Shown piece after piece: positions 209 to 61,300 of a DNA stretch of 64,000 bases. Origin of the DNA: Takakia lepidozioides (Eukaryota; Plantae; Bryophyta); NCBI GenBank assembly GCA_030704615.1, contig CM060733.1, positions 26,970,001 to 27,034,000 of the forward strand. Direction: 5' to 3'. Position 1 is the first letter of the stretch; each line of letters opens with the position of its first letter. Under the pieces are notes generated by a model. That model was not told where the DNA came from and did not search any database. It saw only the letters and a list, made by a program, of their open reading frames with translations. The translations under genes and the position numbers were made by a program.

Positions 209-3200
209 GTGCATTCAGTGGCGTGGAATTGTACGGGAAAGAAGCTTGCATCAGGATCTGTTGACCAGACAGCCCGCATTTGGCACATTGAGCCCCATGG
301 CCATGTATGTACCCCCCCTTTTTCTCTAAAACCAAAAGGAATCAAGATTCTGGTTATCATCGAAGTCTGTCCTCGCGTTGAGATGTGGTGGATGGGTTTG
401 GTGTGGGAGGCCAGAGCAAAGCAAAGGATATGGAGTTGAAAGGTCACACTGATAGTGTGGACCAGCTACGTTGGGACCCAAAGCATGCAGACTTACTGGC
501 TACAGCATCTGGTGACAAGACTGTTCGTCTCTGGGATGTCCGCAGTGAGTACTTATAATGTATTCCCCGTGCTTAACCGCACCCCCAAACTCTCTCTCTC
601 TCACTCTGGTCTTGAGCTCTTTGTTCTTGGTCCCCAGCATGAGGCTTTCGATCCATGATGAATACTTAGGATTTTGTCTGTTTGATGGTGACGAGTGGAA
701 CTATACAGAGAATATCCTTGTACCTGCTTTTGTCCTGAACAAGGAATGAGGATTGTTGTTGCAGCTGGTAAATGCTCACAGCAGGTTGAGTTGAGTGGAG
801 AGAACATCAATATAACCTTCAAGCCTGACGGCTGTCATATTGCCGTCGGTAATCGGGTCAGCACCACTTTCCTCTCCTCTGTTTGGTGTTCTATGCAGTA
901 CATTGGCTGCTCTTGGTAAAAGTTAGAGGAGGGTTGGTCCTGACCTGGTCCTAATACAAAAGTTCCATTTTTAGCACATGGGAGTTCATAATTTTTTTCC
1001 AATCAATAACTATCCATGTGACAACAAGGATGGTGTGAAACGAGTAAGACCTAATTGTTCCTAAAGCCTCCAGGCTTCTCTCAAGCAGTTAAGATACATG
1101 TATTTTGGACTGTAATACATTCTTGAGATGGGTATGCCTTCTTTGTTCAGGAAAGTCTCTTTTGTGATAAAATAGTATGTTCCAGAAGGTTATTTTCTTG
1201 CTCTGCATCAGATTTAATATATTTATGGGTCTCAAGATTCAAAATGGTTCTAAGGTTGTCAAAAATTGGGGCTAAAAAGAGAGGACTGCTGCAATAGTTC
1301 ATCATGGGAAACTCACACATCTCAGCTGGAAGTGGTCTGTTGAGGGGGCAGGTTTTCTGTTACATACAGGAGAAACTCAATGTTTTTCATCAGCTCTTAT
1401 GGGTTGTGCAGGATGATGAGTTGACAATTATTGATGTCCGCAAATTTAAAGCCATTCATAAACGAAAATTCACATATGAGGTAATGTTAAGCCCAGACCA
1501 AAGGCAAGCTTGACTGTCGATGAAATTTTTACTGTTTGATATATGTTCTTTGTAACTGAATGACATGGTGATTGGCTTTGTGGCATTGCACAGGTGAATG
1601 AAATAGCGTGGAATACATCTGGTGAACTTTTCTTTCTTACCACAGGAAACGGTAAGCACATGTTTCATTTGCTTCTGTGCACCTTAAATGCCTTGTAGGA
1701 CGCACTGCAAATTGTATGGACCTCATCTTCCCCTGTTGTTTCCATCTGTCAGCCTTGGAATAGTTTTCTCCAGATAAGGTGTAGTCTCTGTGCTGGAATG
1801 GGTATGTTGGTAAACTCTGGATTGGCAGGTTTTCTGCTTGCGCAAACAGCTAATCTGCCAAGCTCACTATTTCCTGCTGAGATTCTCTAGAGTTCGTTTG
1901 CCACAAAATTTTGTCTCACTGATGTTGGCCACAAACTTAAATTGATTAGACATGGGATTAGTGCTCATCTTCAATAAGTTCCTTGAAAGAGGAGAAGATG
2001 TTGATACATATAGCATCACTAGCTGTATGTTTCCAGGCTCTGGCCTTCCTTAATGCTGCGAAATCTGGTGACTGCATCTTGAGTGGTTTAGTGTCTAGTG
2101 TGCTTGTCAGGTATATGCAGCAAATGCCTGCATGTGCTGTGTTTGTCTGCCCCAAAAAGCTGGTTGCTAATTTGAGTAAGAAGCAACTGAAGTGAGTGGG
2201 ATACGAACAGGGACTGTGGAGGTGCTGCAGTATCCAACCCTGCAGACATTGCATACGCTTGTTGCTCACACAGCAGGCTGCTACTGCATTGCCATTGACC
2301 CCACTGGAAGGTGCTATCTCTCTTTCCGCTGATAAATGTGTTCGCAGATGATCTTAGTGGAAGCGGAATGGTTAGCTAAGCTGTCAGGCTGTGGGGTTTG
2401 GATTTCAGTTTGGTGTCTGATGGGGGAGTAGGTGCATGGCAGATATCTGGCAGTGGGAAGTGCGGATGCGCTAGTGAGTTTGTGGGATGTTTCAGAGATG
2501 CTGTGTGTACGCACGTTCACCAAGCTTGAGTATGGCTTTACCATGTGCTCTCATGGCTCAGTTGTACTTTTGGTTGATCTCTGTGAGCTCAGGTGGTGAA
2601 TGTCAGTCTCATCCATTAAAGACTCTCATGCATGCAAACTATCATAACATCTTCAAAGCTCAGACCAAAAGAAGAAAAAGGCAGCTTGGTATAATGTTCT
2701 GTGTTAGCCAAATAAAAACCATAATGTCATCACTTGGTCTTATCTCAAGACCTGCCAGCTTGGAAAATTGATTGGAAGGTTAGGTCAACCGTCTTTGATT
2801 GTACATGATGAATTGAGAGCGGGGGGTTTATCTGATGCGTATGCTAGCCTTCCATTGACAGTGTACGTGGTAACCTTGGTCTAAAGTGACCTCATTGGGG
2901 ATTGGGGTTATTGCAGGTGGCCTGTTCGAACTATCAGCTTCAACCACGATGGCAGTTATATTGCTTCTGCCAGTGAAGATTTGTTTATTGATATTGTGAG
3001 TGATATGTCTGAACCTTAAAGTCAATCACATGTAGGTAGGTGTGCTTGATACATGGAGGTAGCAGTCTGCAAACCCATGCCATATTGAATCTTGCAAGGG
3101 ATCAAGAAATATTGGGAGCCTGTTTTTGTCAGGCAGTCTTATGACACCTGAAATTAATCCGAGTCATGTGAATTCACTGTCAGTTTGCTTGCTTGGTGTT

Positions 3201-4372
3201 ATCCTGAAGCTCATGATTCTGGGAACCTGTAGTAGTCCTCCTATACTCCAGGGCCTGTGATGAGGTCTATCTTTTTCGTGAATTGTTGATGAAAGCCAAT
3301 TTTCAGGAAGTTACATATTCTTTGCAATTTGTGACACCCGATCACAGTTGGGTGTTGGATGTCATCCAACATGTAACTGATATTGAACGGCTCCTCACTC
3401 AGATTGTAACCATTTACTCGGTGGTGCATAGACAGACTTGACACTTTCCATCTGAATATGGGGTTAGCTAACCTTCAACCCAAGGTCCTTCACTGGACCA
3501 GTAGTGCAAGGGGTCAGGTGTCTCAAGACAGGACTGTCGGTCAAAGCCTTTCACTGCATGAAGAACAGTTAGAAATTTTTGTTAAGAGGAACCTTATGAA
3601 TCCTTAAGGTTCGCCTCGGATGTGCCCATGATTTCTGTAAGGTCCTCCTGGAAACAACTGCCATGTTCTGGCTAAGGGGGACCTCAAATAATTAAAATTT
3701 TCTGACTGTTTTTACGCTGTTGGTGGTTAGCTATGATACACAATTTTTGTCTTCTGGGAATTTGTACTGATTGTTTACTCCATGCAGTCGGAGGTGGAAA
3801 GCGGCCGTTCAGTTCACCAAATACCATGCCGTGCAGCCATGAACAGTGTGGAATGGAATCCTAAGTATAACTTACTGGCATTTGCAGCTGATGATAAAAA
3901 TAAGTACCAAGCTGATGAAGGTGTGTGACCAGCTCTCTCTCCCTCTGCTTTATTTTGCAGATTTGTGCACTGAAAGCTTGACAAAAATTTCGTGCACGCT
4001 CACACGGTTTGATCAGTATTTTCAAGGAAGTGAACTCAACAGTTGTATTTTGTTGCACTACCTGTATAACTTGGCCTTAGCCTAGGGCACATCCTTGTGA
4101 GGAGCTTCAACTTGGATTAGTCCAGTTCCCATTCCCTCAATATCCCACTACTGAAAAGCAGCGTCGTACCACAGAGGGTGACCTCCTACATAGTACTATG
4201 TAAGATTTGAATCCCAGATTGCTTAAGTGGGTCTAGGTCTAGAGGTGACCACTTGGCTATCTGCTGGGCGTTCACTATTGTATATACTCAAAAGGAGGTA
4301 AGAATCAATCTCATGTGCTTAATGTGCATCATTGCAGGAGTCTTCCGGGTTTTTGGTTATGAGACTGTGTAA
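209..4372 (+). CDS. THO3: THO complex subunit 3 (TEX1), WD40 protein; first exon(s) lie upstream of the window. Exons 209-304, 415-544, 765-856, 1412-1480, 1594-1651, 2211-2310, 2443-2529, 2917-2995, 3788-3920, 4338-4372
   Basis: GT-AG exons join in phase to give VHSVAWNCTGKKLASGSVDQTARIW...GHTDSVDQLRWDPKHADLLATASGDKTVRLWD...YLAVGSADALVSLWD...WPVRTISFNHDG...AMNSVEWNPKYNLLAFAADDKNKYQADEGVFRVFGYETV*, matching plant TEX1/THOC3. Confidence 0.95.
4195..4270 (-). mobile_element. Degenerate tRNA-derived SINE-like head in the last THO3 intron
   Basis: Minus strand has A-box TAGCCAAGTGG and, about 35 nt later, B-box-like GGATTCAAATC; no cloverleaf. Confidence 0.4.
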
Positions 4373-4700
4373 ATTGCACCATCTTGAAGGTCTGATCCAG
4401 GTGTCTTCCCGCAGGGACAGAAAGCAGTGCGGATTCTCAGCCACTGAACAGCTTTGTAGCTAAAACAGAACCACCTTAGTCTTAACTGTAAACACAGCCT
4501 ACAGCGACCTTTATATCAGTATGTAGAAACACCGATCCTGGTTTTGGGGGTGGGCTAAGCTCAATACAGTGTTACTGTTTATGGCTGGAGTGTGTCACAA
4601 TTTCGGAGGCTCCTACATTGGCACCTCCCAAAGAGTGTCTACCTGAGTCTTTTGAATGGTGCGGTGACAGTTTGTTGGCTCTGCCTTCCAGGGAGAGTCC

Positions 4701-4971
4701 CTGTGACATGTTGGATACATGTGAAAACGGTCACATGGCTGCCAATCAGGTTCTTGCTCCCGAGTATTCCCCACTATTGCCTTGATCCTTGAAAAAAGTC
4801 CAACATTTTTTGATCCACTGCCCTTTGTCTTTGAGACTCTGTGATATGTTGGTTACATGTGAATTCCTTCACGTCTGCGAATCAGGTTCTTGCTCCCAAA
4901 TATTCCCCACCATTGCCATGATCCTTGAAAGAAGTACTACATTTATTGATCCACTGCCCGTTCTCTTCGAG
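4701..4971. repeat. Diverged tandem duplication, unit about 137 bp (4701-4836 and 4839-4971)
   Basis: Both units share ctgtga.atgttgg.tacatgtgaa...aatcaggttcttgctccc..tattccccac.attgcc.tgatccttgaaa...tgatccactgccc. Confidence 0.85.
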
Positions 4972-9301: not shown

Positions 9302-12300
9302 ATGCCTACTTACGTTACTCGGGAGGTCTCGAAGGTATTGCTCTGCGCTTCTTCTTCCTCTTCCGGTATAAGTTCCAATTTCTATAACGTGTGGATAACC
9401 TCTTATATTCGACAACGCGAGATATGCAGGCACACTGTTGGTCTCCCCGTTATTATATTATTCGGACGGTGTCATATCTATCAGAGCTCGTGTGTCAGAG
9501 AACACAACAGTACAAAGTAGGTGTCTTCTGCTGATTGCCGCAGTTAAAAATCTGACATGCAGGTTCGAATCCAGGCACTGTTGGTGCATTGGGTTTGCTG
9601 TAGCCAGATGGTTATTTACTGAGTATTGGCTCTCTCTCAGTCGACTATTTCAGTAGCGATTTTGAAGTTGCAGCTGGCCCTGAGCGGGAGAAGGATTAAT
9701 AAATCCATCTTACATTTTATCCCAGGATGTACTGAAGTCTGAAGTGTGCATTCAGTGTGTCAAGAACGTTGTAGTATAATCGAAGCCTTCGTGAAAGTCA
9801 AAATCGACCGTTGCCAGCCGCCAAAATGGTATTAGGGTTGCTGCAAGGTGCAAGAATGGATGCCAACGTAGCAGGTTCTGTCTGCTGTAGGGTCTGTCTT
9901 TGTATGTGATACCGTTGGGTTAAAGGGTTAAAGTCTTGGGACTCGTGTTTGTGCATCTTTCTCTCAAAAAGGAGGGTAAGATCCCGAGCTTTAAATTATG
10001 AATAGTGTGCTTGCTTGACAAATGGTGTCTGGAAGCACATTGTGTGCTACCCAGGTGTTATCTTCTTTGTAAACTATCAATGACTTCCTTGTCTCGAACC
10101 TGCTGTTCGAAGTTCTATTGAAGGGGCCCATTTTTCACTTCTTTGTGCAGCTGCCCTCCAGTCATCTTTATTAATGAGGCTACCTTTTGGACTGGTAACA
10201 GATATGGAGGAGGATAGTTTCGGAGTTTACTGTGGAGGTGCCGCTTTTGCAGCAAAGGTGGAAATTTATCCTATTTGGGCTTGTTTTTCAGGTAAGCCTG
10301 TTTCGAGCTCCTGTACACATATTCTCACGAGCCCTTGGAAGGGCACCCCTGAGGCTGTTGCTGTTCTAAACCATCCCAATTATGTGAAACTGGACCTTGC
10401 ATTGGAGGACTTGTGCTGATTTTTGGCGCCTGTGCTTTTGCGAGTTCAAGATGAATCCTCGTAAGATAAGTGTGGGGGGTTTTGCAGTACATTCATGGAG
10501 TTGGGGCTCGTGTGGCACATTATCTGCATCGGCCAGGCCCCCTTCTGCATGATGTGGGCTTTGATTTACTTCCTGTATGTTCCTTTCCCCTTCTCACTGT
10601 ACTCTGTTCTACTCATTTCCTGTCACCAACTAAAAACTGGTCTCTGAAGAATACTTACCTGATTGTTAGATTCCAGTTCTATGTGAGTAATACTGAAGAG
10701 TTGGTAGCCTTTGAGACTTGCAATTGACGGTGAGAGCGTATGCCTCAAAAGAGTTCACCTAGCATCCAGTTTGTTGGAAATCACACACCATTTGATTTTT
10801 TGTGGAAGGCTGACTTCCTGAGCAACCACGTGGTAGCTAGAGAGAGGAAGGGAGAGAGAGGGCAATGTATTTAGTTTGGCCTGTTGCACAGCTATACAGC
10901 AGGTGACTATCGAGATTGTAGAGTGGTACTGTATGCATGTGTTGGAATTGGTCCTTTCTCCTGGAAAAGTTGGCAGGAGACTGCGTGAAATTCGCAGGTG
11001 CTACTGACTGATGATTTGGATGTATTTACAAGTAATGACCTAGTTTTTCTGCAATGGGGAAGGGTGAGGTTTTTAATGGTTCTTTGTGTCTTGTTATTTT
11101 GGGCACTCCACAGGAGCTCGGGGCGGAAAATTCCCACATCAGTGAAACCCTCTTCACCTTCATCTTTGTTTCCTATGTTTTGGTATGCCTTTCTGGCCCA
11201 GGTTCTTTGTATGATCTTTCCAATCAAGTGTTGTTTAGAAACTAGTTCCTCCTGAAATGAACACGTCTTAGTTGTCTTCCATAACTTGTCTTCTTTTTAT
11301 CAAATTTGACACACGCTTCTGATTTGTTACTGAAGTTTTATTTGGCAAGTTTTGTTCCATCAGCGTATTTTTGATGAGAATGATGTGGATCTTTTGGGAG
11401 TGCAGTGGACATTCCATCCATTTGTATTTTATAACAAGCGCTTCTACACTGCTGTGCTTTGGCACAGAACGTTCGCAGTCCTGGTGGTATGTTCCTACAA
11501 AACTAAGACCCCCACTTGTCCCCCACTGCAACATTATATATTTCCTGCAGGAAAACTAAGTGTCATATGCCCATGGTACACTTTCTGCTTCAGCCATTAC
11601 CAAGCTCCCCATTCTGTGTTTGCTTAACTGACCTTTCCATTCCACAAACTCTTGTAGTGCAATATGCACAGTACTTGCTAAAGTGATAGGCATACATCAT
11701 AGTATATGGAACACATCACCCATGTAAGACTCGAAAGAGGGTGGTACTTGGCAAACATGCCTTGTTGGGCAGGTGGAGTGAGCTGGTTGGGGTTTCCCCT
11801 GATATAGCATATGAGCATTTCACCTTGGGTGCCAATGGGTGTCAATGCAATCTGCTACTGTCTCTTTTATAATTCCCATCTGTGCTTGAACCACCTCACA
11901 AGCTCCTCTTAGTCCAGGCTTTCTTTTCTGTCTTTGCCCGTGTCCCCCACTGTACTTTCATATCATTTCTTGCACGCATATGGGATTAGAAATTGTCCCT
12001 ATATATAGTCTCCAGGAGTGTGGTGGTACCTAACAGGAGGGGGTTGTGTGCAGGTTTGTCAAACTCTGAGGGTTGCGTCTTTCCTGGTTACCCAGCTGCC
12101 GGGCCCTAACTATCATTGTCGGGAGGTGAGCTTCTTATATTGTTGGCAATTCACTTTGCATACAACATCCGGGAATCATGATTGATTTGATGTCAATAGG
12201 ACTGGTTTCTTATTGCATTGGCTCTTGGGGTAAAACTTTAGGGTGGGCATGAATTGTATCAGGGGTCACAGCAGATGTCACGCTCTGCCTATAAGCATCA

Positions 12301-14286
12301 TCTTGGAGTTGTATCCTGGCTGTTCATCACCAATTGCATTAAACAATTTCCGACAGTGTTTTTTTGTTATGGGTGTGGGGGGGAGAGAGTGAGACAGCAA
12401 TTAGCTGTATGACACTCGTCATTTGACAATTAGATGAATTTGTTCCCACTGGATACAGGGCCAGGCTGCTGCCACTTTACATGTCCAGAGCATCAAAGAT
12501 GTCCTCCTTCTAAACTGTATGTATACTTTTAGGTCCTGGTAAATCCTTGTTTTCCTTGGGCAGACTCGTGCATTGACTTCACTTTTGGCAAAGGGCTGTT
12601 TCAGCAATTATCTTGTCCTCTTTTGTCAGTTCTTGGGCTGTCCCATGGAGTTATTGCTTGTTTGCCTATGTGAGGCCAGTGTCAGTAACCAGGAGGTTTC
12701 TCTGTCAACTTTGGCATTCTTGTAGTCATTTCCTGCAGTAATTTACAGCTCTCAGCTCGGCTGTGTGGCTTGTCATGCAGTTCCATATGGAGTGATCTAT
12801 GGATGTGGGGACTTGATATTTTCTTCACATATGATATTCGCCCTTACTTTCTGTCACCATTATTCCAAATATGGCTCCAAAAGGCGAGTACAATCAGTTT
12901 AGATCACTGAGGAAAAGTAAGATGAGATAGGATGAGTAGAGATCTTGATTCCAGTTTGCCTCGTAATGAAGCCCTTGATTGGTTTTCCTAGAGTTCTTTG
13001 AATAAGTGTATTGTTGCCATAATCTCTTTGATTTCACAGGTTGTGTATGATTCTGTTATTTCAAGTTCTGTTAAACTTGAGAAGCACCGAATTGCACTGT
13101 TGGGCTTGGATACAATTTTAGCCGCATGTGGACTGATTCTGGGATGACTTGGGGATGTGAACAGGTGGATGAAGAGGGTCGCATGGATGGCAGCTGTAGC
13201 ACTCAGTTTCCTCATTGTCGCCTCACGCAAGCATTACACTGTGGATGTTGTAATAGCCTGGTGGGATTCTTTATTTGGTTCAGATTCCACAGTGATTGCA
13301 TAGTTGTATTATTTGTCCTTCCTTTGTCCTGGGGATCTGTAGAGTAGGCCACAAGAGTTCATTTCTTATAGTGTACATAAGCTGGAGATTTTACAGGCTG
13401 AAGCTCTGTTGGATTGGATGAAATGCTGATTGGACATTGAGGTTTGACATACCCTCTGTTGTGTGGGAACAGGTATGTGGTATTTTTGGTGTTCAACTAT
13501 GTGGATCGCTGTCTCTCTGAAACAGGTGGGTTTATAACCTTGCAGAGTTTCTTAGGTGATTTTACTGACTTGCTAGGAGATTTTGAAGCTCCTTTTCTTT
13601 TCAAACTGTTGACAACAGGTAAATTGAAAGGTTATGGCAGATGCTGTAGTCTTCGGACAGTAGTCCGATGGGGATGTTACCCTCCTGTGCTATTATTAGC
13701 ATGGAGATGCCATAGCTCTCGCTTTCAAATGGCATCCTATATGCAAGATTGAGTTGTGCTGTTTCAAGCAGGTTTTTCTTTTGTATGGCGGTAGGATGAT
13801 TTGAGAATTTGCTAAACATGTGCAGATACCATAGATCGAATGCCAGTTACAGCAGGGATAACTCTGCTCCCACTAAACGTGCGGGTAGGCAAGGAGAGTC
13901 GCAATGAGAAGATGTTGAATGGCAACTCAGGCGATGTGCCATCTGACTGGGTTAGTCCAGGCGCCTTTCCAAACCTTTTTTCATGATTGTCTGGGCTGCT
14001 GTAAAGAAAACATTGTTATTGGAAACAAGGACTTGTGGCTGGGGCTTGTGAGCAGAGTGGGAGAGAGGTTGAGTTTGCTGAACTTGTTCCCACTTGGACT
14101 TTCTATCCCACCCAGAATATCAGACTTCATCTGTGTTTTGGAGGGGTGGAGAGAGAAACACGGTCAGTTTGTTTGCACTGATGCTGAGATATATGTATGC
14201 AGAGACAACGAACACCTGTGAATGGCAAGCATCTGGATGACGCCAACTCCATCACAATGGAGGTGGTTGTAAATGGTAGTCGTTGA
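9302..14286 (+). CDS. IPCS: Phosphatidylinositol:ceramide inositolphosphotransferase (IPC synthase). Exons 9302-9334, 10202-10291, 10488-10574, 11114-11182, 11406-11486, 12054-12125, 12459-12516, 12781-12883, 13165-13260, 13473-13525, 13826-13950, 14203-14286
   Basis: Spliced product has [42 protein letters not shown] and [13 protein letters not shown] (catalytic H/H/D of the IPCS/SMS family). All phases are consistent; intron 8 needs a GC donor. Confidence 0.95.
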
Positions 14287-15669: not shown

Positions 15670-16995
15670 ATGGAGCAGGGTTCTAGCGAGCTGGATGTGT
15701 ATGCTCTACATCCGCTGTTCCACGAGGTGATCTAGGCGGCAGGCCACCATGGACATTGGTAACCCCTTCGTGCCTGCACTGTCTGTCTCACTGTTTCCAC
15801 TCAGCCTTTTTTGGGGGGGTATTGTGGTGGGTGGAGGTTTCCTTTGTGTGACGCTTTTCATTGTGAGTAAGCAGTGTCTGCACGCCGTAGAATTGCACAC
15901 GTCCAGGAGGTGCGCGTCCTTTTGATCTCTGGCACTGACTGGATTCTTGGTGTGTGGACCTTGTCGTGTTAAGTTTACTGGGTTGCATCAGTCAAGGAGG
16001 TTTAGCAGCGAAGTGGTCATGTTGGTAGGTGCAATAGGTCACGTCGCACATGGAAAATCATCAGTGGTCAAGGCGATCTCTGGTGTTCAGGTAAAGCTCC
16101 TCAGTGGCCCATCACTTTTGTTTTTATTTTTTGCATTGTTTGTGGGTACCTCATCCTTGTAGTTTATTGGCTATACTCAACATGTCTTGTGACTCTACAT
16201 GGATTTCAGTGTAGAAGATCGACATGGTGAGCCGTGCATCATAAAATAGCTCAAGTGCACGTAGTCCACCAAATTTGATTTGTTGGTACCGAGTAGGAGC
16301 TTCTCAATGTCTTTCAATATATGGGATTAGCCCTAGTCCTTCTATTGGAATTGAGCACTGCTTGCTTCTTCCAGAGCATGGAGTTTGTTGGGCAATATGA
16401 AATTGTGGTTGATATTTGCCCTTATTGCTTGGTCGTTTGGTTGCAGCAGAACGCAATTGCTGATGGGGTTCCTGTGGTCCCTCCCTCTGTGCGGCTCAAA
16501 TATACTGTGGATGTTGTGTGTGAATATACGATAAATAAGATCACCATTCTGGATGCGGTTTCATGGCACCTCAAAATATGATTGTCATTAGGTCATTTGC
16601 TGTCAACAACCTCAGCATGAGATCAAGGGCGGTATGGCTGGTGGCAGAATTTGCAGGTATGTCATCATATGTCTTAGTTGCTTTTGTGAGGTCTGACCAT
16701 CCACATGTTCCTCTTACTTGATACACGTATGATGGCAAGGGCTACAAGCATGTTAGTTCAGGTCACCAGATCAGAAATTAGTGTTAACCTGGTTTGGGGG
16801 CAAAGGGAAGTGTGGCAAAATCCCTTATTGAAGCGGTGGTGACAAATTTCTCATATTGGCTACCCCAAAGTTTGAGTTTGGGATTGATGGAATGCTTTCT
16901 TGGGGCAGGTCGTGTTGAGATGGGGAAATAGATTGAGATCCGGCCAGGAATAATTACAAGGATGAGATGAACAGTTATAAGAGTGTGCCTATTAA
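15670..16995 (+). pseudogene. EIF2G: eIF2 gamma subunit pseudogene: intron-containing, internally deleted, with stops and frameshifts
   Basis: Exon relics MEQGSSELDVYALHPLFHEVI*/RQATMDIG, GAIGHVAHGKSSVVKAISGVQ|gt, ADGVPVVPPSVRLKYTVDVVCEY...NMIVIRSFAVN...EIKGGMAGG|gt and IEIRPGII; intervening exons are missing. Confidence 0.9.
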
Positions 16996-34864: not shown

Positions 34865-34925
34865 ATGAAATGAAATGAAATGAGATGAAATGGTGCTTTA
34901 TAACGTCCGCGGAAAGCTCATAGAG
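34865..34925 (-). mobile_element. 5'-truncated non-LTR retroposon end with a (CATTT)n tail
   Basis: Reverse complement CTCTATGAGCTTTCCGCGGACGTTATAAAGCACCATTTCAT is identical to 57028-57068. Confidence 0.65.
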
Positions 34926-35871: not shown

Positions 35872-35931
35872 GGTGTCCCTTCCAATGCTCGTGTCTCTCT
35901 TCTAGAGTAAGATCACTAGGATCCTAAAACT

Positions 35932-38250: not shown

Positions 38251-38282
38251 GATGATCGTAGAGAATGAAGGAAAAAATTAGA

Positions 38283-39966
38283 CTATGAAGTGGAATGAAC
38301 GGGACCCACTAAAATTAGATTTCTACGAAGACTAGTTATGTAAAGAACGTTCTCGAGAGTTTTTAATTGCCCATTAGGGAAGTGAAAACTTACATCCCCC
38401 TTGTCTTGCACTGGGTGAGACTGTCCGCTAGCGGACTTGACATTCTGGCACTCTATAGGAGGCAATTTGATCTCGTCCAAGAGTTCTGCATTCCCAATCA
38501 CATGCTTTGAGGCCCCAATGTTAGAGTTCCAGGGATCTCCCTTCATTTTAGCGGACAAGATAGCAAGAGAAGAGCTCGGCTGCAAATGCTTGATCGATTT
38601 CACCTTGGGTAGGATGCTAATTCATCTTCCACAACGTTGGTCTAATTTTTCTATAATGTAAAAATGAGCACTTCACGAGACACTAGCGCCAATAGTGTCC
38701 AGGTTTCCCATACTTGTGACATGTGCCACGAGATGAATTTCCTCCAAAGGAAGTTCTGATTGATCCTCTGATTCTTCATCAAAGTCTGGAATCTGACCAA
38801 CCTAGCTTCTTCGTCGTTGAAGCGTCGAGATTTATTGAGATAATTGAGTCTGCTTTGTTTAAGCTGTAGACGTCCATTCAGCTCTTCCAGAGTATGAAGT
38901 ACTTTCTCATTGCTAATGACTTGGACAAAAGCTGTGAAGCTTTCTGTTAGTCCGTTGATGATCTGCTCCACAATGAGCTCATCACTAGGTTTTGCATCGA
39001 TCTCCGCTATTTGATGTAGTACGCTCTTTACTTCCACCATGAATTTCTCCACTAGTGTTCCCTCCTCCATTTTTAACTGGCTGAATTTGTTACAGATCAA
39101 AAGACATTGGGCATTGTTTGTAGTACCATAGAGAGTCTTCAAGATCTCCCAACACTCCTTTGGATTGGTAGCCTAAACCATGTATGGAATGATGTGATCT
39201 TTAACGGAAAGCTTCAAAATCGCCAAGCCAGCCTTGTGCTTGAGTTTTTTCAACGTTCCTTCGTCCAAATCTAGTGCCTCATCTGTGACGTCAAATGAGA
39301 TCCCAGAGGTCCTCATTTTTCCAAGATAGTCTGCATATTGAATTTCCGAATGGAGTAGTTGCTAGAACTATCCAATTTGTGAGTTTTAAAGATAGTAAAC
39401 TCTAGAGAAGATGTGGCCATGATAGCGAAAACAAATAAGCTACTACAGGTGCAAGATCAAAATCACATTCAAGGTGAACAGTGTAGGCAAAAGAGAAAAT
39501 AGCACATAAACAGAAAAACAGATGAGAATCGAAACTTGCCACCATACGAATACCGCAAAGTGAAGCTAGAATCCTCGTAACAATCTCTTATAAATACGTG
39601 ATCCCACTTCTAAGTTTGGACAACCGAAGGAGCAGTGCTCACTAGTTCCACCCATCAAGCGGAGCAACGCTCACACTCACACTCACCAAGGATCAGTCTT
39701 GGGTGTTATCCGGCTATGATACCATGAAGAAACACTCAGCAATGTATATCTAACTCAATATCTTACGCAGAGGGAAGACGGGGATATATAGGGACTGAGG
39801 CATTAATATTGAGTGGGATTGCCGAGAAGGATACCGGTGGTGGCAAGAATCCTAAGCTAAATGAATAGTTGTCTACCATTATATTCTAGCCGACACTATA
39901 TCCCTATATCTCATGTGCACTCTTTATGAACTATGGGCCTATATCTTGGTGTAAACTGTCCCAACA
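38283..39966 (-). mobile_element. Degenerate Ty1/Copia element 2 with 5' LTR (39725-39966) and tRNA-Met PBS (39712-39724)
   Basis: LTR TGTTGG...TTCA followed directly by TGGTATCATAGCC; gag KLDSSSNYSIRKF...KFSQLKMEEG...IINGLTESF; protease relic GASKHVIG...NVLYITSLRRNLILVG. No 3' LTR found. Confidence 0.85.
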
Positions 39967-44312: not shown

Positions 44313-45956
44313 CTAGTAGTATGATGAACGACGGAATGGGAGACAACAACAGTGACTCCATCGACGCCGTCGTCTTAGGTAGCGCGGGTCAGCCTTTGCC
44401 ATCCTCACAGGGCTACTATTCCATTCAGAGGCCAATCTGCGTACACACCAAAATCACTCCAGGTAAAGAATATGAATCAAAACACAGCTACAAAGTTTCA
44501 TCGTCACTCAGCCCATCAAGTCATAAAAACTCATTCTGACCATGGAAAGTATGTAAGATGCCAAAAGTACTCACACTGGAAATGCAAAAGACCTTGTGCT
44601 GGCAGAACTGCTGTCAGACCGGCCGGAGATGCTTCTGGAGTAAGCCCAGCTTGATCCACTATGCATTGTTGTTTCAGAAGAGGGTCCAGGGTACAAGTGA
44701 GGATTTTCTTCCCTAATAGTGAATGATCCACTGCTGCTTCTTGAGGAATCTCCTATTATGTCTGCAGCCTGCATTCTTGAATAACTGTCTGCTGAGACAG
44801 CTGGAAGAATTTGGACAGTACGAGGAGAAGACAAAGTGGTTGTCTCCTCAGTGACTAATATTGAGCCCAAGCCAGTCCCCTCAGCAGCAGTCTGCTTGTC
44901 TTCATTTATTGGGGTTGCATAAACACCTGATGATGATGCAGGCAGACCCATTACTTGCATAGATTTTTCAGGTGCACAGTCAGTCTCTCCAACCTCAACT
45001 GTTGGCACTGAGCTTTTCACAACTTTTAGACTCTTTGGTGCAATATTCTCTTTCTCTGGATCATCAACCTGAAACATCACACCTCCTCCCATTTTCAAAC
45101 CAACCAATAGTTCTCTGGATACAGCATCTCCTTCCGAGTCCTGCTGCTTGGCATCTGCAATCTCGGGTGTAGGGTTCAAATATAAGGTTGACTCAGGAAC
45201 AAATGACTCCAGCACAGCTTTCCAAATGATAGGGTCTTCCTCCACATGAGACTGCCCATTGCATGGAGGAGCTCTGAGCAATGCACTTTCGTCTTCCATT
45301 TCCTGAGAAAAGTTGCCTCCCTTCGTGACCTTTGTGTGCTGCTCTGCCTCAGGCTGGTCATGCAGTAGGGTCTTCTCCTCAAAAAAGAGAGCAGGTTGTC
45401 TAGGTATCTGAATGCGTAAACTATCAGTCCTAGACTTTGCTGATGCAACCATAGCAGGTTCTGTAGGACACAGTTGCCTTGGCTGCCTCCAATCTGAAGG
45501 AAGGGCAACTCCCTTCAAGACCAGCAAGTCCTCTGAATCTTTTGCGAGACATTCCCCAACACCTCCCTGCCAATCTTTGTTCCCGATGTTGATAGCAAGG
45601 GTTAGCTCACTGGAAAGTGACTCCTTTATGGAGTCCAAAGTGCCACAATTCCCACCAGAGGATGCATGAAAAGGCAGCCGCCGCAGCCTCTTTATGTGGA
45701 AAGAAGGGAGATTATCCTCATCGCTTTCTTGGTTGGTGTTCTCTGAGGGAGGACCAAGAGTGTTCATGGGGCTTCCGTTATCATGTTTGGTAGTGACACC
45801 TTTGTCTTCCTCATACCCATTATCCAGGCCTTCCTTTGACAAATCTTGAAGCGCATCAACTTTACAGAATTCGGCAATTTTCTTTTGTTCTGTACCAGCT
45901 TCCTGGCTTTCCCTAACAGGTAAAGAGCTTGGACGTGCTTCCTCTCCATTAGTCAT
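44313..45956 (-). CDS. Disordered protein with a BASL-like / gar2-related C-terminal motif. Exons 45956-44575 and 44436-44313
   Basis: C-terminus SISGRSDSSSASTRSFAFPV|LASEWNSSPVRMAKADPRYLRRRRRWSHCCCLPF. First in-frame ATG is at 45956; a different upstream coding exon cannot be excluded. Confidence 0.82.
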
Positions 45957-47819
45957 CTGAGAGGCCTCTGGCTCACGCCCAGTTATTAGATACTTGGCGC
46001 TCACTGTGTCAGCAATCAGAAGTTGTCTTCATGCACCTCAGTCTGTGTAAGATTCTCTCTAACAGCAGCATCTCTCTTTATCTTTGCCAAAGCTGTACCC
46101 ATCTGGATCTAAGTCCACTAACAAAAAATGGGGTGTTGACATTAACCTTTACATCGGTAAAAGCAAATGGTCAGACTGACATTTATATCAGAATTGAGTC
46201 CTACACACTCAAATCAAGTAGGAAGCCCTCCATAATGGCCCACCCGAAGGAGTCTCTGGGTCTCCAACGACGAACAACGCCATCTTCATTGTCGATCGCA
46301 AAAGGACCCTGTGTTTCATGAATCAGCACAATTACAAACAAGCCAACAATGAGCACTTGTGATATGTAGCTCTGCCGCTCCCGTTTCTCATTTTGTTAAT
46401 AAATGAGCTTACCCTGAGAAATAATGCACTGTCATGAAGACACGTACTGATAAACCACTCATTCATAACATCTAGAACACATCACCATGAAAATTGTCGC
46501 TCTTATCTTTATACGAGGTTTCCTAGTAGACGAAAGAGCTCGAACAAAAACTCAAGAAAAGGTACTTGTTTTGAATATATGAAGGATGTAGTCACAGTGC
46601 AGAATTATTGAAGTGTACAAAAGCTTGCGAAATTAATACATCGCAAGAACTTCTGAAGACTTCGATTGCCAGCCGAAAAGTGTGGAGACACAGTCTGGTT
46701 GAAAATCCTTCTGCGAGGTAAACATCTAAAAATACAAACACGCGCGCGAGGTGGTTTAACACCTTACACACTCGACGGTGAGGCCAGACAGACTCACCTG
46801 GACACAGAAGCGATCTGGAAGAGGCGATCGCCTGAAGAAAATTATGCTTCAATGACCACGGAATATGGCACCTAGACTAAAACCTCCAATACACAGAGCT
46901 TCGAGCTAACGCGATTTCCAATCTCAGAACTTGCCAAGAAAAATTCCAGTGGAGACGCAATCCGGAGAGGTGCGAAGAAAATACATTCCTCTAATATCCA
47001 AAGCTTGTCCAAGGCGGTTACTCGTAAATAACAACTCAAACTAGACCATCTCGTAACGCCAATGTGACGGAAGAAGCGATGCAAATCTTGTATAAAAAAA
47101 GGCAGTTACTTGCGAAAATAACCTTCCAACCGAGAAATTGTGAGAACACGGAATGCTGGAATAAGCACGAGGAATTACAATCCAGCCAATGCACGCCTAG
47201 AGCATGATTTTCCGATCTTAGGCCTACAATCCACCGATATTATCACGCTATACAGGGAAAGACCTCGTAACGCCATCGCGAGAGCCTGAGTCTCGCCGAG
47301 CAGAAGATTCAACACAGCAATAGCAAAAGATACAAAGTCCGAGATTCAAGCTTAAATCACGGTAAAGACGTAAAGACTGCTCTAGCAAGAGCAACCTCCC
47401 ACCGCCATCGCCGATCATCCCTTCAGCTTCCCATCAACACCTCCATGCACCTGGGGCAGACGACAGCAGCCCCACTTCATAAAACCAAGGGCGAATATAC
47501 TAGTGAGTTCAGCTTACTAATAGTGAGTTTGGTGTCGCTAGTAAATCACTAGTAAGTTGTGAGCAGTAACTGACAACCTACTATCATGCGAACCCCCGCC
47601 TAAAGGGATAGTTTTGTCGGTTTTCAGGCGCCCACGTGTGGATACTTCAACCCGTCGGATCGTGGTCAAGGCTCATCGTGTCCGTTGTAATGGAAAGAGA
47701 GCGATATGTGTACAAGATCTGGCCCACCTTCATTAGTGAAAGGACGGACCGCTAAATGTTACCATACCTATTTTCATCCACGTAAGTATATTTAATATGT
47801 TATTTATACAATATTTAAA

Positions 47820-49534: not shown

Positions 49535-50820
49535 ACATACATACTATAAGTTGATTGTGGTTATGAAGTCCCCAACCTCTGGGGTTCTAGCATTTGCAGC
49601 TTGCATGCTATCAATGTGCAGAACAAATGTGATGGAGAGAAACTTACCCCTACCGAAACACGGCCTTCAGTTCCAATTGCATGACAGGGTGTTGTGAAAG
49701 CTGATTACCGCAGAATGAGTGCATGTGGAATGCCCCTCCTGCTAGAATGAATGCAATGCCACCACCACCAAGATTGCTGCCGATCCTGGAACCCATAAAC
49801 CACAGTCCAGTTTCGGGCTCCTTATGAGAAAACCTTCCTGCTGCAACAAATTGTAAGGTAGAAGCTCATGTACTCACCATGGTATCAAGAATTGACACTT
49901 GGTTTGCATGGCCCTATCTATGTAGATGTGAAGGGTCACATGCCCCACTCCATCTTGTTGGAAAACCACTTACGTGTGGTCGGGCTAGGGATTGAACCTA
50001 GGACCTCCCCCATTCCGATGGGGTGCTCTACCACTGAGCTATCTGTCCCATTCTGTTCTCAAAGTGTCGTGCAAGGGCTATCACCTTGACACTCCAACAC
50101 AACTTGTACATACAAGATTGAGCCACTTGCCTTTACATGCATCATTTGGATAACACGCAGAAGTGATAAAGGGACTCTGGTCCATGGTATGCAAGTGATT
50201 GAGTGGTATGGCTATACAAGCCAAATGGTAGAGATTGACATGGAAACGTGGATGGATTGCAGTTCCAATCAAGCACAAAATTTTGCAATATCACATACCA
50301 TAGGCCACAATTCTGAATAGCTGATAAACAATCGATCCACTCCTGAAGCGTGTTGAACTTAAGAAAGCCCTGCTAGCCACCAATCTAATGCAACATCACA
50401 TGACCTCTATCACTGATGCATGCATATAACCATTCTACTTGAGATTTAAATGGATTTGATGTTCTTCATGCCCTCAATTGTGCACTGAGCAACAACAAGA
50501 CAAGAGACTTCCCCATTATAAACAAACTTGCATACCTGTTACAAAAGGTTTTAAGTGGATCAGATATAGGGTCAGTGTGCAATTAGGTTGGATGTTCTAA
50601 TGGCACCCACCTTCTTCGATATTCCCAAATGCCAGCACATGTCATTTCAAGTTTTGAAACGTCTCAAAAAATTAAAGTTCTTGCTAGCTGTAGAACATGT
50701 TTTCAACTGCCCCACGCCAATGGATAGTTAATGGATATGTCACACCTGTCATGGAATTAACATGCCTCTCCTCCTGCGCAAGCCTTGCAACTGGCGTAAT
50801 GTAGCTGGGCTCCACTAAAC
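49535..50820 (-). pseudogene. Spliced relic resembling a TET/JBP-type 2OG-Fe(II) dioxygenase. Exons about 50820-50536, 50369-50131, 49840-49648, and from about 49545
   Basis: Reconstructed with frameshifts: LPFGLYSHTTQSLAY..DQSPFITSACY...AGRFSHKEPETGLWF...GGGIAFILARRGIPHAL...GRVSVG|YV. Distal His and R-x-S strand are present; HxD is not intact. Confidence 0.4.
49977..50048 (-). pseudogene. tRNA-like cloverleaf inside a 179-bp TG...CA unit (49921-50099)
   Basis: GGACAGA TA GCTC AGTGGTA GAGC A CCCCA TCGGAA TGGGG GAGGTC CTAGG TTCAATC CCTAG CCCGACC A. D, anticodon and T stems pair; acceptor stem has 3 mismatches; anticodon loop has 6 nt. Confidence 0.75.
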
Positions 50821-55348: not shown

Positions 55349-58300
55349 ATGGCGCGTGCAAGAACTCGAATGAGGCTCTTGAAATTCCCAGCAATTTCTA
55401 CTCTCTCTCGCTGGTGCGGCTCGTCACTGTTGGCACTTGCAGTGCTGTCGATAATTTCTGGACGAATTCTTGATATGGAACATTTCCGCGGCAATTCGAA
55501 TCTAATATCTCCCGTTCCAATTCTGCATCCTTTGACAGTGTCCGTTCCGGTGGTGAGCACCATGTCTCTGTTGATACATTTTTGTGCAATGCCACAGTAC
55601 TCGTGACTGCAAGAGCAATATAGAGATGTGGTTCTGTTCTGAGACCAGCTATGTAGTGGAAGCTGTACGGGCGTAACCCCCTTTTTCTTCGTTTGTGTCC
55701 TGTCCTGCATGCTTGCTGGATAACCGACAGTAAGATTCAGTTTTGAAACTTGTGACTGATCCTCCGTAGTACCAGTGTGATTGTTGCATGTCGTTACTGG
55801 TAGTGCATCGTTTGTGTTTGTCCATATACCCATATTTTTCACGAAAGAAGAGGCGTGGAGTACTTACGAGCTCGTCGGAGACTAGTTCGGAAATTGGACA
55901 TAATAGACAATGTGCAGAAGAGTAGTCATAGTGGAACTTCTTTAGCTGGACATTTCCGCTTGCGATAGATTGATTGTTGAGGTAAATATTTGTGTCAAAA
56001 TCTGGGAGGCCTACAATTGAGGCTGTAAAATGCCAGGCTTGTTCAGGACCTATGCACATCCTAAACCCTACTTAGTACCAGCAGACCTCTATCATGGATG
56101 GGAGTGCAGCACGGTGATGACTCCCACCCACTTCTCTCCAATTGTAGTTTCTACTGAGAGGTTCTTCCATGTAAGGAATTTTCCAGTGATCACCTGCATA
56201 AGCCTGATATTTAACCTACCCCTTCCCCCTGGTGGAAGCAATTGACTTTAATTAACCTGTGTTCTGAAATATTGGAGCTCCTCTTCGGTTTACTGGTTCT
56301 CCTACTGCATGGTGTGACTATTTGCATTGGGGCCTGTAGCAGAGGAGAGAGACTTTAAACGAGACAGGCAATGGTCTGCAAGATTTGCAAGATGTACCAG
56401 TAAGTCCTCTTGTCATAAACCCACTTTCTCTATCTGTGAAATCGCTTTCCAGATGCTATTATCTCGTGGGATTGTGCAATGTTATGCCATGTGCCTTGAT
56501 GTCTTTACTCGTGTTTGTATTGAAGTCCTGATGCCACAAAAGAGGGTTGAAGCTAAGCTTAGAGAAAGATGGCTGATGGGTTTGTGTGGATGGTGTGGGG
56601 CTTCTAGGGGCAAGGGGATGGATTATTGGCGCGTGTTTGGGACTCTGAATCTGCAGAATATTACTATGGATGTAGTGAACCCAGCACACACTTCCCAAGT
56701 AGGTGGCTCTCTCTCAAAATCTGTAATTAGCCTGTGCACAGGCAAGGCATTGAATATACCACTGGAGATTTGCAGTATCAGTATCATCAGATTGCTCGAG
56801 CTGCAGGAACAAGGATTCATTCATTTTTGTTCTCATTTTTTTTTGTCAACATAGATTATATGTTTCCTTGCTTCCTGGCACAGTTGGGACAACCTTGGAG
56901 CCCAATGGTTATTTGTTCATCGTCACAAGTGGCGGATTAAACCAGCAAAGAACAGGGGTAAGCTCCTTTCCCACCACTACACTTTTTGTTGGTATCCCTC
57001 CTGCTGTCATCCATTCCTTTCTCCCTCCTCTATGAGCTTTCCGCGGACGTTATAAAGCACCATTTCATTTCATTTCCCTCCCTCCAAGCATGACCATTCA
57101 GTACTTGTAACCTTCATTAGATACCTTAGGCAGCCCTCATTCCTAGTTTTATCTACTCTCCAGTCACAGTACCTTGACACTGTCGATGAGGCAATCGAGG
57201 GGTTGCTTTATTAAGGACTGGGAGTGTGGGGCAGAACCTCCTGCTTCCTTTTGTGTATCCACTTGGTCCCAGGTTCCATGATGTCCTTGGAGCATGGTAA
57301 TACCTATGTGCTTCCTCCAGCTGAATCTTTGGTTGAACCAGGAGGAGAGGGGTTTAACCCTCTTATTTTATTTAACTTTCTAGCTGGCATCCTTGATCAT
57401 CCATATCCGGGTTTTATCAGGCAGGTTCATCTTAACCTGTATTTGGGTGGGTCTGGACTGATTGGTGGCCGGGGCACTTGTAGATAACTGATGCTGTTGT
57501 TGTAGCACGGTTGCTAAATGCGACACTTCTGGTGCCTCAGCTGGACCATCGCTCTTATTGGAAAGATTCCAGGTGTCTTTCTCTCTTTGGTTGTGCTTTG
57601 GTGTGTTGTTCTACTGGGCCCTTTGGGTCTTCTGCTGACTTCATACATTTTGTTCTTTGCTTGTTGTTTCTCGCTCTCTCTCTCGTACATGAGGATGTTG
57701 AGAGGCATCTAGAGAGCTGCACGTGAAACGGAGGAAATAGCTCTCACAGAATCCCTGATTCTTCAAACAGGCCTCCTTTGTCTTCAGAGACAAGTGCCTC
57801 ATCATGCCTTTCTACCCTCTCTGCTAAGTTCCCTCGAGAGGTGGGAAACTTCTAAGTCAGTTTTCACACGATATGGGTTGAGACAGGCAGATGGAATCAT
57901 GAGGCTTGAACTTATCCAGTATGTAGAGGCTGTGCATCAGTTCTTTATCTCATGCTGTTGCTACTACAGGATCAGGGCAAGATACGTCTTTTTCTTTGTC
58001 CATTGCAGAAATGCTAGAGTGCCAGGGAGTGGGCAGTCAGTACACCTGCAGACAACATAGATATGAGCACCCTTAATTCAATTCGCTACCCTTGTTTCTA
58101 ACCCCTAAACCTCCTGTGAGGGTTAGAATTCCCCAGAGACTATGCTGATAATGGTACTTTGTAATGGAATTTCATGAGGAGTTTGTGTGCCACATATCTG
58201 AAGTGTCTCACATTGATTTCTGTGGGCTGGGAATGACAGCAATTTCAGTGATATCTTTGACGTGGACTGGTTCATATCTTCCGTAGCACCTGATGTAAAA

Positions 58301-61300
58301 GTGATAAAAGCTTTTCCTCCTGAGTCCAAGAAATTTTTAACGAAGCAGTTGTATACCTTGCGGGTCCCACGGAAGGCCTCGCCCCCGTATTACCTGACCC
58401 GGATCTTACCAATTCTGCAAAAAAGACATGTAGGGTTTCTTTGCCCTCTGTGGATTGCATCTCTATTCTGATTTGTGTACCAACCTCTGTTTTAGCTTAG
58501 CTTCGCGTATTTCCTTCCCTTTGTTGATATCTACATCATTGACCAATCCTAAGGCCCTCTCTGCTTTCTGCTACAAAAGTATGTTGCTTTCAAAATGTTC
58601 CAACTCTTGAATACTTTTAATTGGTACATGGCAGTCTCTCCGTCTCACCAAGTTCGACTACAGGCTGGCAAACAAGCTAGATAAGGACTTGCAAAGGCTT
58701 CGGTGTCGAACTAATTACAAGGTAGTGGAAGTACATTGTGGATTCAATCTCTTGGAATGAAAGTAATCTGAATGTTGTTATCTGAGCTTTTTTCTGGAGT
58801 AGTACATAAGATGTCTGGATCAATTATGGGCTAAACAGATTGCTGCTGTACTGTTCAACTCACTTAAGATCTCTTTCAGGCACTGCGTTTCACCAAACCA
58901 TTACAGGACATGGGGCAAGCTTTGGTGGACAGGATGAGGGCCAAACATGGTCGATACATAGCACTGCATCTTAGGTAGGGGTGTGTGTGTCTCTGATGTG
59001 GTTATTCACTTACTATTAAGGTAAGGTGAGGTGGTGCTTGTTCTTGGTCTCTACAGGCCATTCTAGGACTAATTTGGAAGTTTACACATGGAGTGAATGT
59101 TTCATGGAGATTTTAGACCTACGGACGCAAGCATTTAAACACATGTCTCCAATTTAGGTTGTTGAGCTCCAGACCGTCCAACAGTCAATCATGTGAACTG
59201 ATCTTGTAGAGTTCTTGCACAGAGCAGGTGATGGATGAACTTTTCATATGAAATTGGATAGTCAGAAGTTGCTAAGGTCATGGGAATTTCTGCTTCATTC
59301 AATTTGTGTAACAACAAGGCTTACAATGGCCCAACTCATGTTTGGCAGGTATGAATCTGATATGCTGGCATTCTCAGGCTGCTACTATGGTGGGGGTGAC
59401 AAGGAGATCAAGGAGTTGAGTGTTATCCGCAAGCGTTGGAAAACACTACACGTATGTGCCCCTATTTCGTTATCTTTTAGTTGTCGAGTTGTATGATTTA
59501 TGGTCCTATATTCAATTCTGATATGGCCGAAACTTTGTTTCTGCACATGTGCACCATGGAAGAGTTTCTCACATATCACATCACATATTTGATTACATTT
59601 ATTTCATCTGTGGTACTGAAAGCACGTGTCTAATGTAGAGGCCTGCCTTGTTGAGTTCATATCATGTCCTCTTGTGACAGGCTGCCATATTGTCTTCTTA
59701 AATATGTATAGGAATAGGTGAACCTGCCAAACCATTGCTTGATATTATCCTGCTTGTTTATTGGAACCAACTACACTCTCTTTTGTGTGTCAAACAGTAC
59801 CGGAACCCAGACAAGGAACGACGGAATGGAAAATGCCCTCTGACTCCACAAGAAGTTGGTCTCATGCTACGAGCGCTAGGGTATGGAAACGACTCATATT
59901 TGTATGTGGCATCTGGTGAGGTGTACAATGGCGAGGCTTCGCTGGCACCTTTGAAGGCTCTGTTCCCATATTTTTTCACAAAGGAGACATTGCTTGGAAA
60001 GAAGGATCTAAAGCCCTTTGCAAAGTTTTCGTCACGGATGGCAGCAATTGACTACATTGTTTGTTCACAAAGTGATGTGTTTGTGGCAAATAACAATGGG
60101 AATATGGCCCGCATTCTGGCAGGCGAGAGGTATGTTTACCAGCATCTCCATCTTGCATTCCAGCAGAGGCACTTCCCTACAGCATGTACATACCATTTTC
60201 ACATTTTGAAGTTGGAGAAACATGAAATGTTCATATTGATCATGTGATTATCATGATCATAATAATGATTATTATGATCATAGCTACTTAAACAGAACAC
60301 CAACAGGTACCACATGGTCATTCAAGATGTCGTGTTCAACTATCAACAAATTGCTACAGATATTGTCTTGCCTGTGCTATCTAATGGTCAATAATTTTAT
60401 GTTTGTGCCCAATAGATTACCAATACAAAGCACTTCCAATTAAAAAACCTTTCTTTTTGCGATGACGGTCTTTTTTATCCTCACAGGATACATCTATGAA
60501 CTGTATTTGAAAGAATTTGTCTCCAAGTCTGTAGGGCTCTATGTACATGCATGCATCCATGGATCTTAGCCAATGGGGCTGTGGTTGTGCCTGCAGGCGT
60601 TTCAATGGCCATAAGCGAACAATTCGTCCCAATGCAAAAAAGCTGGGGTCCTTATTTCCCGCCCGCCACACTATGCCTTGGGATGAATTTGCCAGTAAAT
60701 TGCGTAGTTTTCAGAAAGGTTTCATGGGGGACCCTATGGAGGTGGGTTTTATGTTCTCCACCAATTTCAGGAAGTTAGTTGCACTTGTTCAGAATCTCTA
60801 GCTGCATTGGGCAAGGAGCTGGTCCTTGTGCTTCTGTGTGAATATTTCTGGATCAACTGTAGATTGGATGTACAGAGTGCTTTTGGTCAACCCCTCCAGA
60901 GTGCTTTCTAGAGAGCTGCACTTATCTATGGAGGAATAGTGTAGCTATGTTTGGATGTTTGTGCTGTTTCTGAAGCAGTGTCTGCATCTCACTTGTAAGC
61001 TTGATATCATATTTCCTGCAGGTGCGGCCTGGTCATGGAGAGTTTCATGAGAATCCTGCTGCTTGTATTTGTGAGAAGCCAGAAGCAAAAGAAAGGCTGA
61101 AGGCTTTGTGGGAGCAGGAAATGAAATTGCTTACCGCCAATGAAAGTGAAATTGTGAAGGTGCAGCCACAAACTTTAGATTTGAAAATGAACCCAGTTGT
61201 ACCTGCTGATGATAGAACAGAAGAAGATGAGGACAGTGATGTGGAGCTTCCAACGGATTTGGAGGATGACCAGTTGATGTTGAATGAGGAGGACTTGCCA

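Follow-up and report, generated by a model that had tools for sequence, protein, structure and literature searches.

Introns of four genes in one window of Takakia lepidozioides DNA (by the window we mean the whole 64,000-nucleotide stretch of contig CM060733.1 that was analysed) have ends that are skewed in opposite directions, C/U-rich behind the donor and G-rich before the acceptor, and all but one of them lack a pyrimidine-rich tract. We read this skew as a splicing-signal dialect that is specific to the lineage. In addition, the two ends of the same intron show better contiguous complementarity than do the ends of different introns; we consider this excess to be probably real and small in effect, and the statistics place a specific, non-repetitive end-to-end helix in about 20-25% of the introns. 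We give about an even chance to the reading that these are ordinary U2-type introns with polarised end signals, in which the two zones are mainly single-stranded signals and terminal stems are confined to a minority of introns. Generic bridging by pairs of C-tracts and G-tracts, in which the skew exists to hold the intron ends together, is not supported.

Gene models and intron set

The DNA of the window is nuclear and comes from a seed-free, bryophyte-like land plant. All intron statistics reported here come from 37 introns of four genes in this one 64-kb window, all on the plus strand, as follows.

305-4337, plus strand: THO3/THOC3-like WD40 gene with nine complete introns, exons matching Pfam Beta-prop_THOC3; introns 305-414, 545-764, 857-1411, 1481-1593, 1652-2210, 2311-2442, 2530-2916, 2996-3787 and 3921-4337, with frame-preserving junctions between conserved exon peptides
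208, plus strand: further THO3 acceptor
9335-14202, plus strand: inositol-phosphorylceramide-synthase-like (IPCS-like, PAP2) gene with eleven introns, exons matching Pfam PAP2_C; introns 9335-10201, 10292-10487, 10575-11113, 11183-11405, 11487-12053, 12126-12458, 12517-12780, 12884-13164 (GC-AG), 13261-13472, 13526-13825 and 13951-14202, RNA-confirmed
25759-30250, plus strand: TRM8-like methyltransferase gene with eight introns, exons matching Pfam Methyltransf_4; introns 25759-26950, 27570-27841, 27901-28194, 28252-28785, 28855-29289, 29361-29562, 29607-29961 and 30063-30250, with frame-preserving junctions
56699-61021, plus strand: O-fucosyltransferase-family gene (O-FucT) with nine introns, exons matching Pfam O-FucT; introns 56699-56883 (medium confidence), 56958-57483, 57573-58239, 58430-58634, 58722-58879, 58975-59348, 59452-59797, 60130-60596 and 60742-61021, with frame-preserving junctions

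The IPCS introns are established at the RNA level: all eleven stretches are skipped exactly by spliced RNA contigs from two public runs of the same organism. Ten of these introns are GT-AG and one (intron 8, 12884-13164) is GC-AG, a form that was seen in spliced contigs of two runs. Over the complete set, which has a median intron length of 300 nt, there are 36 GT-AG introns and one GC-AG intron, such that all 37 have the GT/GC...AG ends of canonical U2-type introns, and removal from RNA is seen for 11. The Pfam matches were obtained with single exons, and the profile positions continue from exon to exon (50-72, 73-95 and 113-143 for TRM8; 1-27 and 32-61 of PAP2_C for IPCS). The acceptors at 414, 2442, 10487, 13164, 29961 and 58239 and the donors at 305, 10575 and 56958, which the original prediction had named, are found at these positions, and every acceptor that it quoted is also the acceptor of an intron in our models.

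Junctions in THO3, TRM8 and O-FucT were chosen on reading frame and a narrow splice consensus only. Tract composition was not used, and therefore the choice of junctions cannot favour the pattern under study. Where the frame left a junction undecided, it was picked on the human THOC3 or Arabidopsis TRM8 sequence (the THO3 donor at 2530 was picked on THOC3). Not included are the upstream O-FucT introns, the last TRM8 intron and the TRM8 intron that ends near 27509, whose donor is ambiguous. More introns, including orthologous ones, were sought by exact-protein look-ups, which gave no match. A single-exon DUF1442 open reading frame (ORF) was examined for the same purpose; its bryophyte relatives are all distant (47-62% identity), and it has no other exon within the window.

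Several features of the splice sites are recorded here in their own right. The commonest donor hexamer is GTATGT, the yeast-like form, which is found at 9 of 37 donors; at donor position +4, T (14 introns) is about as common as A (12), the flowering-plant consensus being GTAAGT. The acceptor of TRM8 intron 5 is a tandem CAG pair 6 nt apart (29289 and 29295, within 29284-29295), both of which preserve the frame. Run X1 also contains unspliced contigs over the IPCS introns (11475-14231), which differ from the window sequence by ~1% in substitutions and small indels; these could reflect intron retention, DNA carry-over or another accession.

Composition of the intron ends

Land-plant introns are U-rich, with a U- or pyrimidine-rich 3' end. 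The original prediction described C/U-rich 5' ends, G-rich 3' ends and a missing polypyrimidine tract for this window, and these features are borne out in the 37 introns, the two skews far beyond chance. Mean composition is given below, with positions counted from the donor (+) and from the acceptor (-).

+7 to +36: A 19%, C 26%, G 16%, T 39% (37 introns)
Intron interior: A 25%, C 21%, G 22%, T 32% (37 introns)
-33 to -4: A 21%, C 15%, G 30%, T 35%, pyrimidines 50% (37 introns)

Behind the donor (+7 to +36), 27 introns have less G than C and 5 have more (Wilcoxon p 2e-4 for G minus C); before the acceptor (-33 to -4), G exceeds C in 28 introns and falls short of it in 6 (Wilcoxon p 1e-5), and the comparison of the 5' with the 3' end gives p 3e-6. 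The skew is seen in each of the four genes, is weakest in O-FucT and is present in full in the RNA-confirmed IPCS introns, and the intron interiors of the same transcripts are without it. Similarly, CCC is 2.5-fold enriched behind donors and GGG is 2.1-fold enriched before acceptors, each triplet being depleted at the opposite end, and G-runs occur within the last 40 nt of 20 of the 37 introns.

Just one of the 37 introns reaches at least 70% pyrimidines at -23 to -4, a region in which pyrimidines average 49% and G+T makes up 69%. Closer to the acceptor, at -15 to -6, G+T accounts for 75-85% of bases and C for only 5-20%. In the profile of the set, no pyrimidine-rich 10-nt bin was found upstream of the acceptor out to -72. 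We found no description of such a skew in bryophyte introns in the literature searched, the coverage of which was incomplete, so that its novelty is unproven.

Contiguous helices between intron ends

The original prediction held that the two ends of these introns often pair. We formalised the contiguous complementarity that it claimed as the best ungapped helix score between the ends of an intron, a metric that was adopted because RNAduplex tolerates large loops and has a noisy background, with values near -22 kcal/mol even for random 54 x 77 nt pairs. The best helix scored 20.08 for true ends and 18.28 for mismatched ends (z 3.5, p 0.0004; 37 introns). Dinucleotide shuffles of each end window scored 18.39 ± 0.49 and none of 150 reached the real value; therefore neither composition nor correlated composition accounts for the excess. 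In 60 sets of pseudo-introns, which are length-matched random genomic segments, the mean difference was 0.09 ± 0.56 with a maximum z of 2.4, and no set reached the real value.

The excess belongs to the true ends and to the antiparallel geometry. When the windows were moved inward by 60-120 nt in the same introns, z fell to about 0, compared to 2.2-3.0 for the true ends of those introns; pairs that span exons gave z 0.6, the physically impossible parallel geometry gave z 1.0 and direct repeats gave z -2.3. All ten scoring schemes were positive (z 1.8 to 3.6), and permutation restricted to introns of the same gene gave z 3.8. The excess is seen separately in the eleven RNA-confirmed introns of IPCS (z 3.0) and among the remaining 26 (z 2.7), and after correction for five metric families, one of which was positive, p is about 0.002. 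With respect to individual introns, 26 of 37 lie below the median of mismatched pairs and seven lie below the 5th percentile, where 1.85 are expected (p 0.002); the signal is carried by about 4-9 introns.

Individual terminal stems

The stems that stand out are listed below, all on the plus strand.

28268-28281 (+17 to +30) with 28733-28746 (-53 to -40), plus strand: TRM8 intron 4 stem, 13 Watson-Crick pairs and 1 G:U, with more pairs on both sides
13549-13573 with 13783-13807, plus strand: IPCS intron 10 stem, 25 positions with several G:U and 4 mismatches
1658-1676 with 2179-2197 (-32 to -14), plus strand: THO3 intron 5 stem, equalled by 1.4% of mismatched pairs
27607-27629 with 27797-27819, plus strand: TRM8 intron 2 stem, equalled by 1.4% of mismatched pairs, 16 expected end-to-end pairs
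10582-10601 (C/U-rich) with 11050-11069 (G-rich), plus strand: IPCS intron 3 stem, equalled by 2.8% of mismatched pairs
2538-2551 with 2860-2873, plus strand: THO3 intron 7 stem, equalled by 4.2% of mismatched pairs
11507-11519 with 12033-12045, plus strand: IPCS intron 5 stem, helix score reached by 5.6% of mismatched pairs, best of 37 by RNAduplex

These stems have 13-25 positions, join the region +7 to +60 to the region -4 to -66 and loop out 140-510 nt. The TRM8 intron 4 stem ranks at the top of all 37x37 pairs of ends and is retained in the minimum-free-energy (MFE) and centroid structures. No mismatched pair reaches the score of the IPCS intron 10 stem, for which 23 end-to-end pairs are expected in the ensemble, and in THO3 intron 5 the 5' arm begins immediately after the donor hexamer. 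The stem in IPCS intron 5, which the original prediction had put forward as pairing at 12 of 13 positions, has exactly those coordinates and stands out among the 37; the match consists of 10 Watson-Crick and 2 G:U pairs with 1 mismatch, is retained in the MFE and centroid structures, and has its 3' arm directly 3' of a CTAAC branch-site-like motif. The two other examples that had been offered, in IPCS intron 8 and in O-FucT, are at the level of chance, since they are equalled by 33% and 28% of mismatched pairs, respectively.

The strongest stems are mostly of mixed sequence, with a C-tract paired to a G-tract only in some (IPCS introns 3 and 5). An Rfam search of the introns found no RNA family that could account for the stems. 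No run X1 variants fall in the stem arms, where fewer than one was expected, so this result is uninformative.

Energies, folds and co-occurrence

Measures of stability gave a different result from the helix score. The duplex-energy comparison proposed in the original prediction, in which RNAduplex is run on the first 60 and the last 80 nt, showed no advantage for cognate ends (true -22.3 vs mismatched -21.9 kcal/mol; z -0.5, p 0.29), and length-matched non-genic segments gave about -21.3 kcal/mol. The energies of cognate, mismatched and random-segment ends are alike, and therefore the opposite skews do not raise pairing of the ends over that of random genomic sequence. Similarly, whole-intron MFE structures have 9.2 end-to-end pairs vs 8.7 in random segments, and the predicted end-to-end graph distance is no different. 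In the ensemble, real introns have 8.1 end-to-end pairs, compared to 7.5 in chimeras (introns given the last 80 nt of another intron) and 6.7 in random segments (p 0.46 and 0.34). Folded whole, TRM8 intron 4 and IPCS intron 5 do no better than their shuffles (z -0.08 and +0.92).

C-runs near the donor and G-runs near the acceptor are distributed independently of each other: they occur in 14 and 20 introns, respectively, and both occur in 8 (Fisher p 1.0). Tandem Repeats Finder detected no AC or GT repeats at the intron ends. The claim that the ends often pair finds partial support, from contiguous helices, which exceed those of mismatched ends, and none from duplex energy, MFE structure or ensemble pairing.

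Alternative explanations

In the explanation that we favour, a C/U-rich zone (CCC, CUC, CUU, UCU) at about +7 to +35 behind the donor would aid recruitment of U1 through RNA-binding proteins of the TIA-1/UBP1 or PTB type. A G/U-rich zone (GUG, UGG, GGG, UUG), which occupies the last 35-70 nt, the place of the pyrimidine tract in other plants and in animals, would stand in for that tract and may be bound by the U2AF large subunit or by another RRM protein. Both zones would thus be mainly single-stranded intronic splicing signals. Terminal stems exist in a minority of the introns, as in some yeast introns; such a helix, likened to the yeast stems, may bring the donor near the branch and acceptor region. 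The null energy and folding tests, the lack of C-run and G-run co-occurrence and the confinement of the signal to few introns together make the skew unlike a pairing device.

Several points weigh against this explanation. The sample is small, being 37 introns from one window and a single strand, and 26 of the 37 introns rest on homology-based models made in this analysis. The helix signal fades without the top 4-6 introns (p rises to 0.08 without the top four), and three of the five metric families (RNAduplex, MFE and ensemble pairing) are null. The stems do not differ from mismatched pairs in their balance of G:U vs A·C and give no sign of selection at the RNA level. Finally, the roles assigned to the two zones are extrapolated from what is known of TIA-1/UBP1, PTB and U2AF.

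The most serious competitor, which we regard as a distinct possibility of lesser probability, accepts the skew as a real dialect and takes the helix excess to be an artefact of small samples or of analysis choices, or else a neutral by-product, with structure playing no role. The helix metric was taken up only once the first metric had failed, its signal comes from a handful of introns and the three thermodynamic measures are null. Moreover, the ends of any RNA tend to be close in predicted folds, and pseudo-introns match real introns in end-to-end pairs. Against an artefact, the p value of 0.0004 survives correction for the five metric families and the sign is the same in every scoring scheme; the controls for end position, geometry, shuffling and pseudo-introns show no such excess, and two independent subsets both show the excess.

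A second alternative is that C/U-rich 5' ends and G-rich 3' ends exist to pair, such that bridging is general and lowers the need for U2AF, as in the AC/GT introns of fish. We consider this unlikely. The opposite sense of the two skews, the cognate helix excess and the C-tract to G-tract stems of IPCS introns 3 and 5 are what such a system would produce, and there is a precedent (PMC4691745), but cognate duplex energies equal those of mismatched ends and of random genomic DNA, ensemble end-to-end pairing does not separate real introns from chimeras and pseudo-introns, C-runs and G-runs do not co-occur, the strongest stems are of mixed sequence and not C:G tracts, and whole introns fold no better than their shuffles. 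The structural interpretation in the original prediction therefore survives as specific stems in a minority of introns and not as a general mechanism, since energies, folds and co-occurrence are all null; structure-bridged splicing in general is unproven.

It is improbable that the skew is passive, that is, without any positive signal and produced by mutation bias together with the avoidance of sequences that could act as cryptic splice sites, GU behind the donor and AG before the acceptor. Depletion of G behind donors and of A (15-18%) before acceptors would fit such avoidance, and avoidance of AG shapes 3' intron composition in other species (PMC10946897). This process accounts for neither the 3' depletion of C and enrichment of G nor the 5' enrichment of CCC, and the interiors of introns in the same transcripts are not skewed. 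AG avoidance may be a cause of the low A before acceptors here, but not of the exchange of G for C.

Least probable of all is that the terminal inverted repeats are relics of MITE- or introner-like transposons that filled or created introns: such elements would put inverted repeats near intron ends, and dispersed repeat fragments do lie inside TRM8 intron 4 (28579-28692 vs 22902-23005, 74% identity) and one O-FucT intron (57028-57076 vs 34877-34925, 98% over 49 nt), but within the 64-kb window the arms lie outside these fragments and are not flanked by direct repeats of target-site type, and in several introns only 6-7 nt separate the exon from the 5' arm, too few to hold an older intron.

Other features of the window

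Outside the four genes, we noted the following features.

4701-4971: 136-bp unit in two copies (84% match), immediately downstream of the THO3 gene
About 15990-16070, plus strand: isolated open frame with an eIF2-gamma G-domain motif, followed by a donor-like GT
33104-33913 and 35449-35901, minus strand: two single-exon ORFs, one DUF1442/O-methyltransferase-like and the other a Ctr-family copper transporter
36647-39172, minus strand: intergenic open frames resembling gag and integrase fragments of copia-type retrotransposons (by translation only)
44574-46028, minus strand: 485-codon open frame with no Pfam match and no homologue among 5.8 billion proteins
49977-50048, minus strand: tRNA-like sequence at the Rfam tRNA gathering score, with an abnormal anticodon loop according to ARAGORN

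No further eIF2-gamma exons were found downstream of the fragment near 16 kb and no gene model was obtained; this frame could represent either a captured exon or a fragment of a gene. The DUF1442/O-methyltransferase-like protein is without the C-terminal ACT domain carried by its bryophyte relatives, and its best relatives, in Marchantia, Riccia and Physcomitrium, are at only 47-50% identity (62% for a metagenome fragment). The tRNA-like sequence may be a tRNA-derived repeat.

Comparison with known systems

Yeast introns offer a structural likeness. Stems that join sequence downstream of the 5' splice site to sequence upstream of the branch point are reported for yeast introns by Goguel and Rosbash in 1993 and in later work (cited in PMC4691745). 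The stems described here are similarly non-repetitive, intron-specific helices that run from +7 to +60 to a region near the branch site or acceptor, the branch points here being putative, and complementary segments of this type, behind the donor and before the branch point, are present in a subset only (7 of 37 introns). Unlike the yeast case, the introns are those of a plant and are 200-570 nt long, and the predicted 5'-to-3' distance is not shorter than in random RNA.

In fish (AC)m-(GT)n introns, AC and GT repeats bridge the two ends and splicing proceeds without U2AF2 (Lin et al. 2016, PMC4691745). As in those introns, complementary sequence classes are found here at opposite intron boundaries; in fish they have been proposed to bridge the splice sites and to make a pyrimidine tract and U2AF2 dispensable. 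Specific helices are in excess here across introns and not across exons, and C-runs and G-runs are not enriched for joint occurrence. The Takakia introns differ in that they have no AC/GT simple repeats, the stems, each of unique sequence, occur only in a minority of them, and their predicted stability is not above that of controls. In human structured introns, GGG in the first 40 nt and CCC in the last 40 nt co-occur (PMC4691745). G- and C-triplets are likewise enriched at opposite ends here, but the polarity is reversed (CCC follows the donor, GGG precedes the acceptor) and there is no excess of co-occurrence.

The 3' ends also recall the REPAG sites of Nguyen and Xie 2019 (PMC6339879), a regulated subset of 3' splice sites with a G tract between the pyrimidine tract and the AG. 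G-runs in the last 40 nt are common to both. Here, no pyrimidine-rich bin lies upstream, and a G/U-rich end is the norm. Where the pyrimidine tract of a human intron is weak, C-rich and G-rich enhancer motifs within the intron, read by proteins, are reported to compensate (PMC2481429); the placement of these motifs at the two ends differs from that in Takakia, and the kingdom is another. Avoidance of AG shapes 3' intron ends in many species (PMC10946897).

Implications

A bolder proposal is that, across the genome of this lineage, a G/U tract has taken the place of the pyrimidine tract and cooperates with the donor-side C/U tract, partly by intron-specific base pairing, to give splicing that is less dependent on U2AF and is assisted by structure; this would make these introns a plant equivalent, free of repeats, of the AC/GT introns of fish. 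We hold this to be doubtful. The skew also bears on gene prediction in genomes of this kind. If the G/U-rich acceptor regions and the C/U-rich donor-proximal regions are used, recognition of the 3' splice site can be rewired within plants, and a rewired acceptor signal, if true, would point to a changed specificity of U2AF or of a substitute factor. Similarly, if the terminal stems are functional, structure-assisted pairing of splice sites would extend from yeast and fish to plants, and would do so without repeats.

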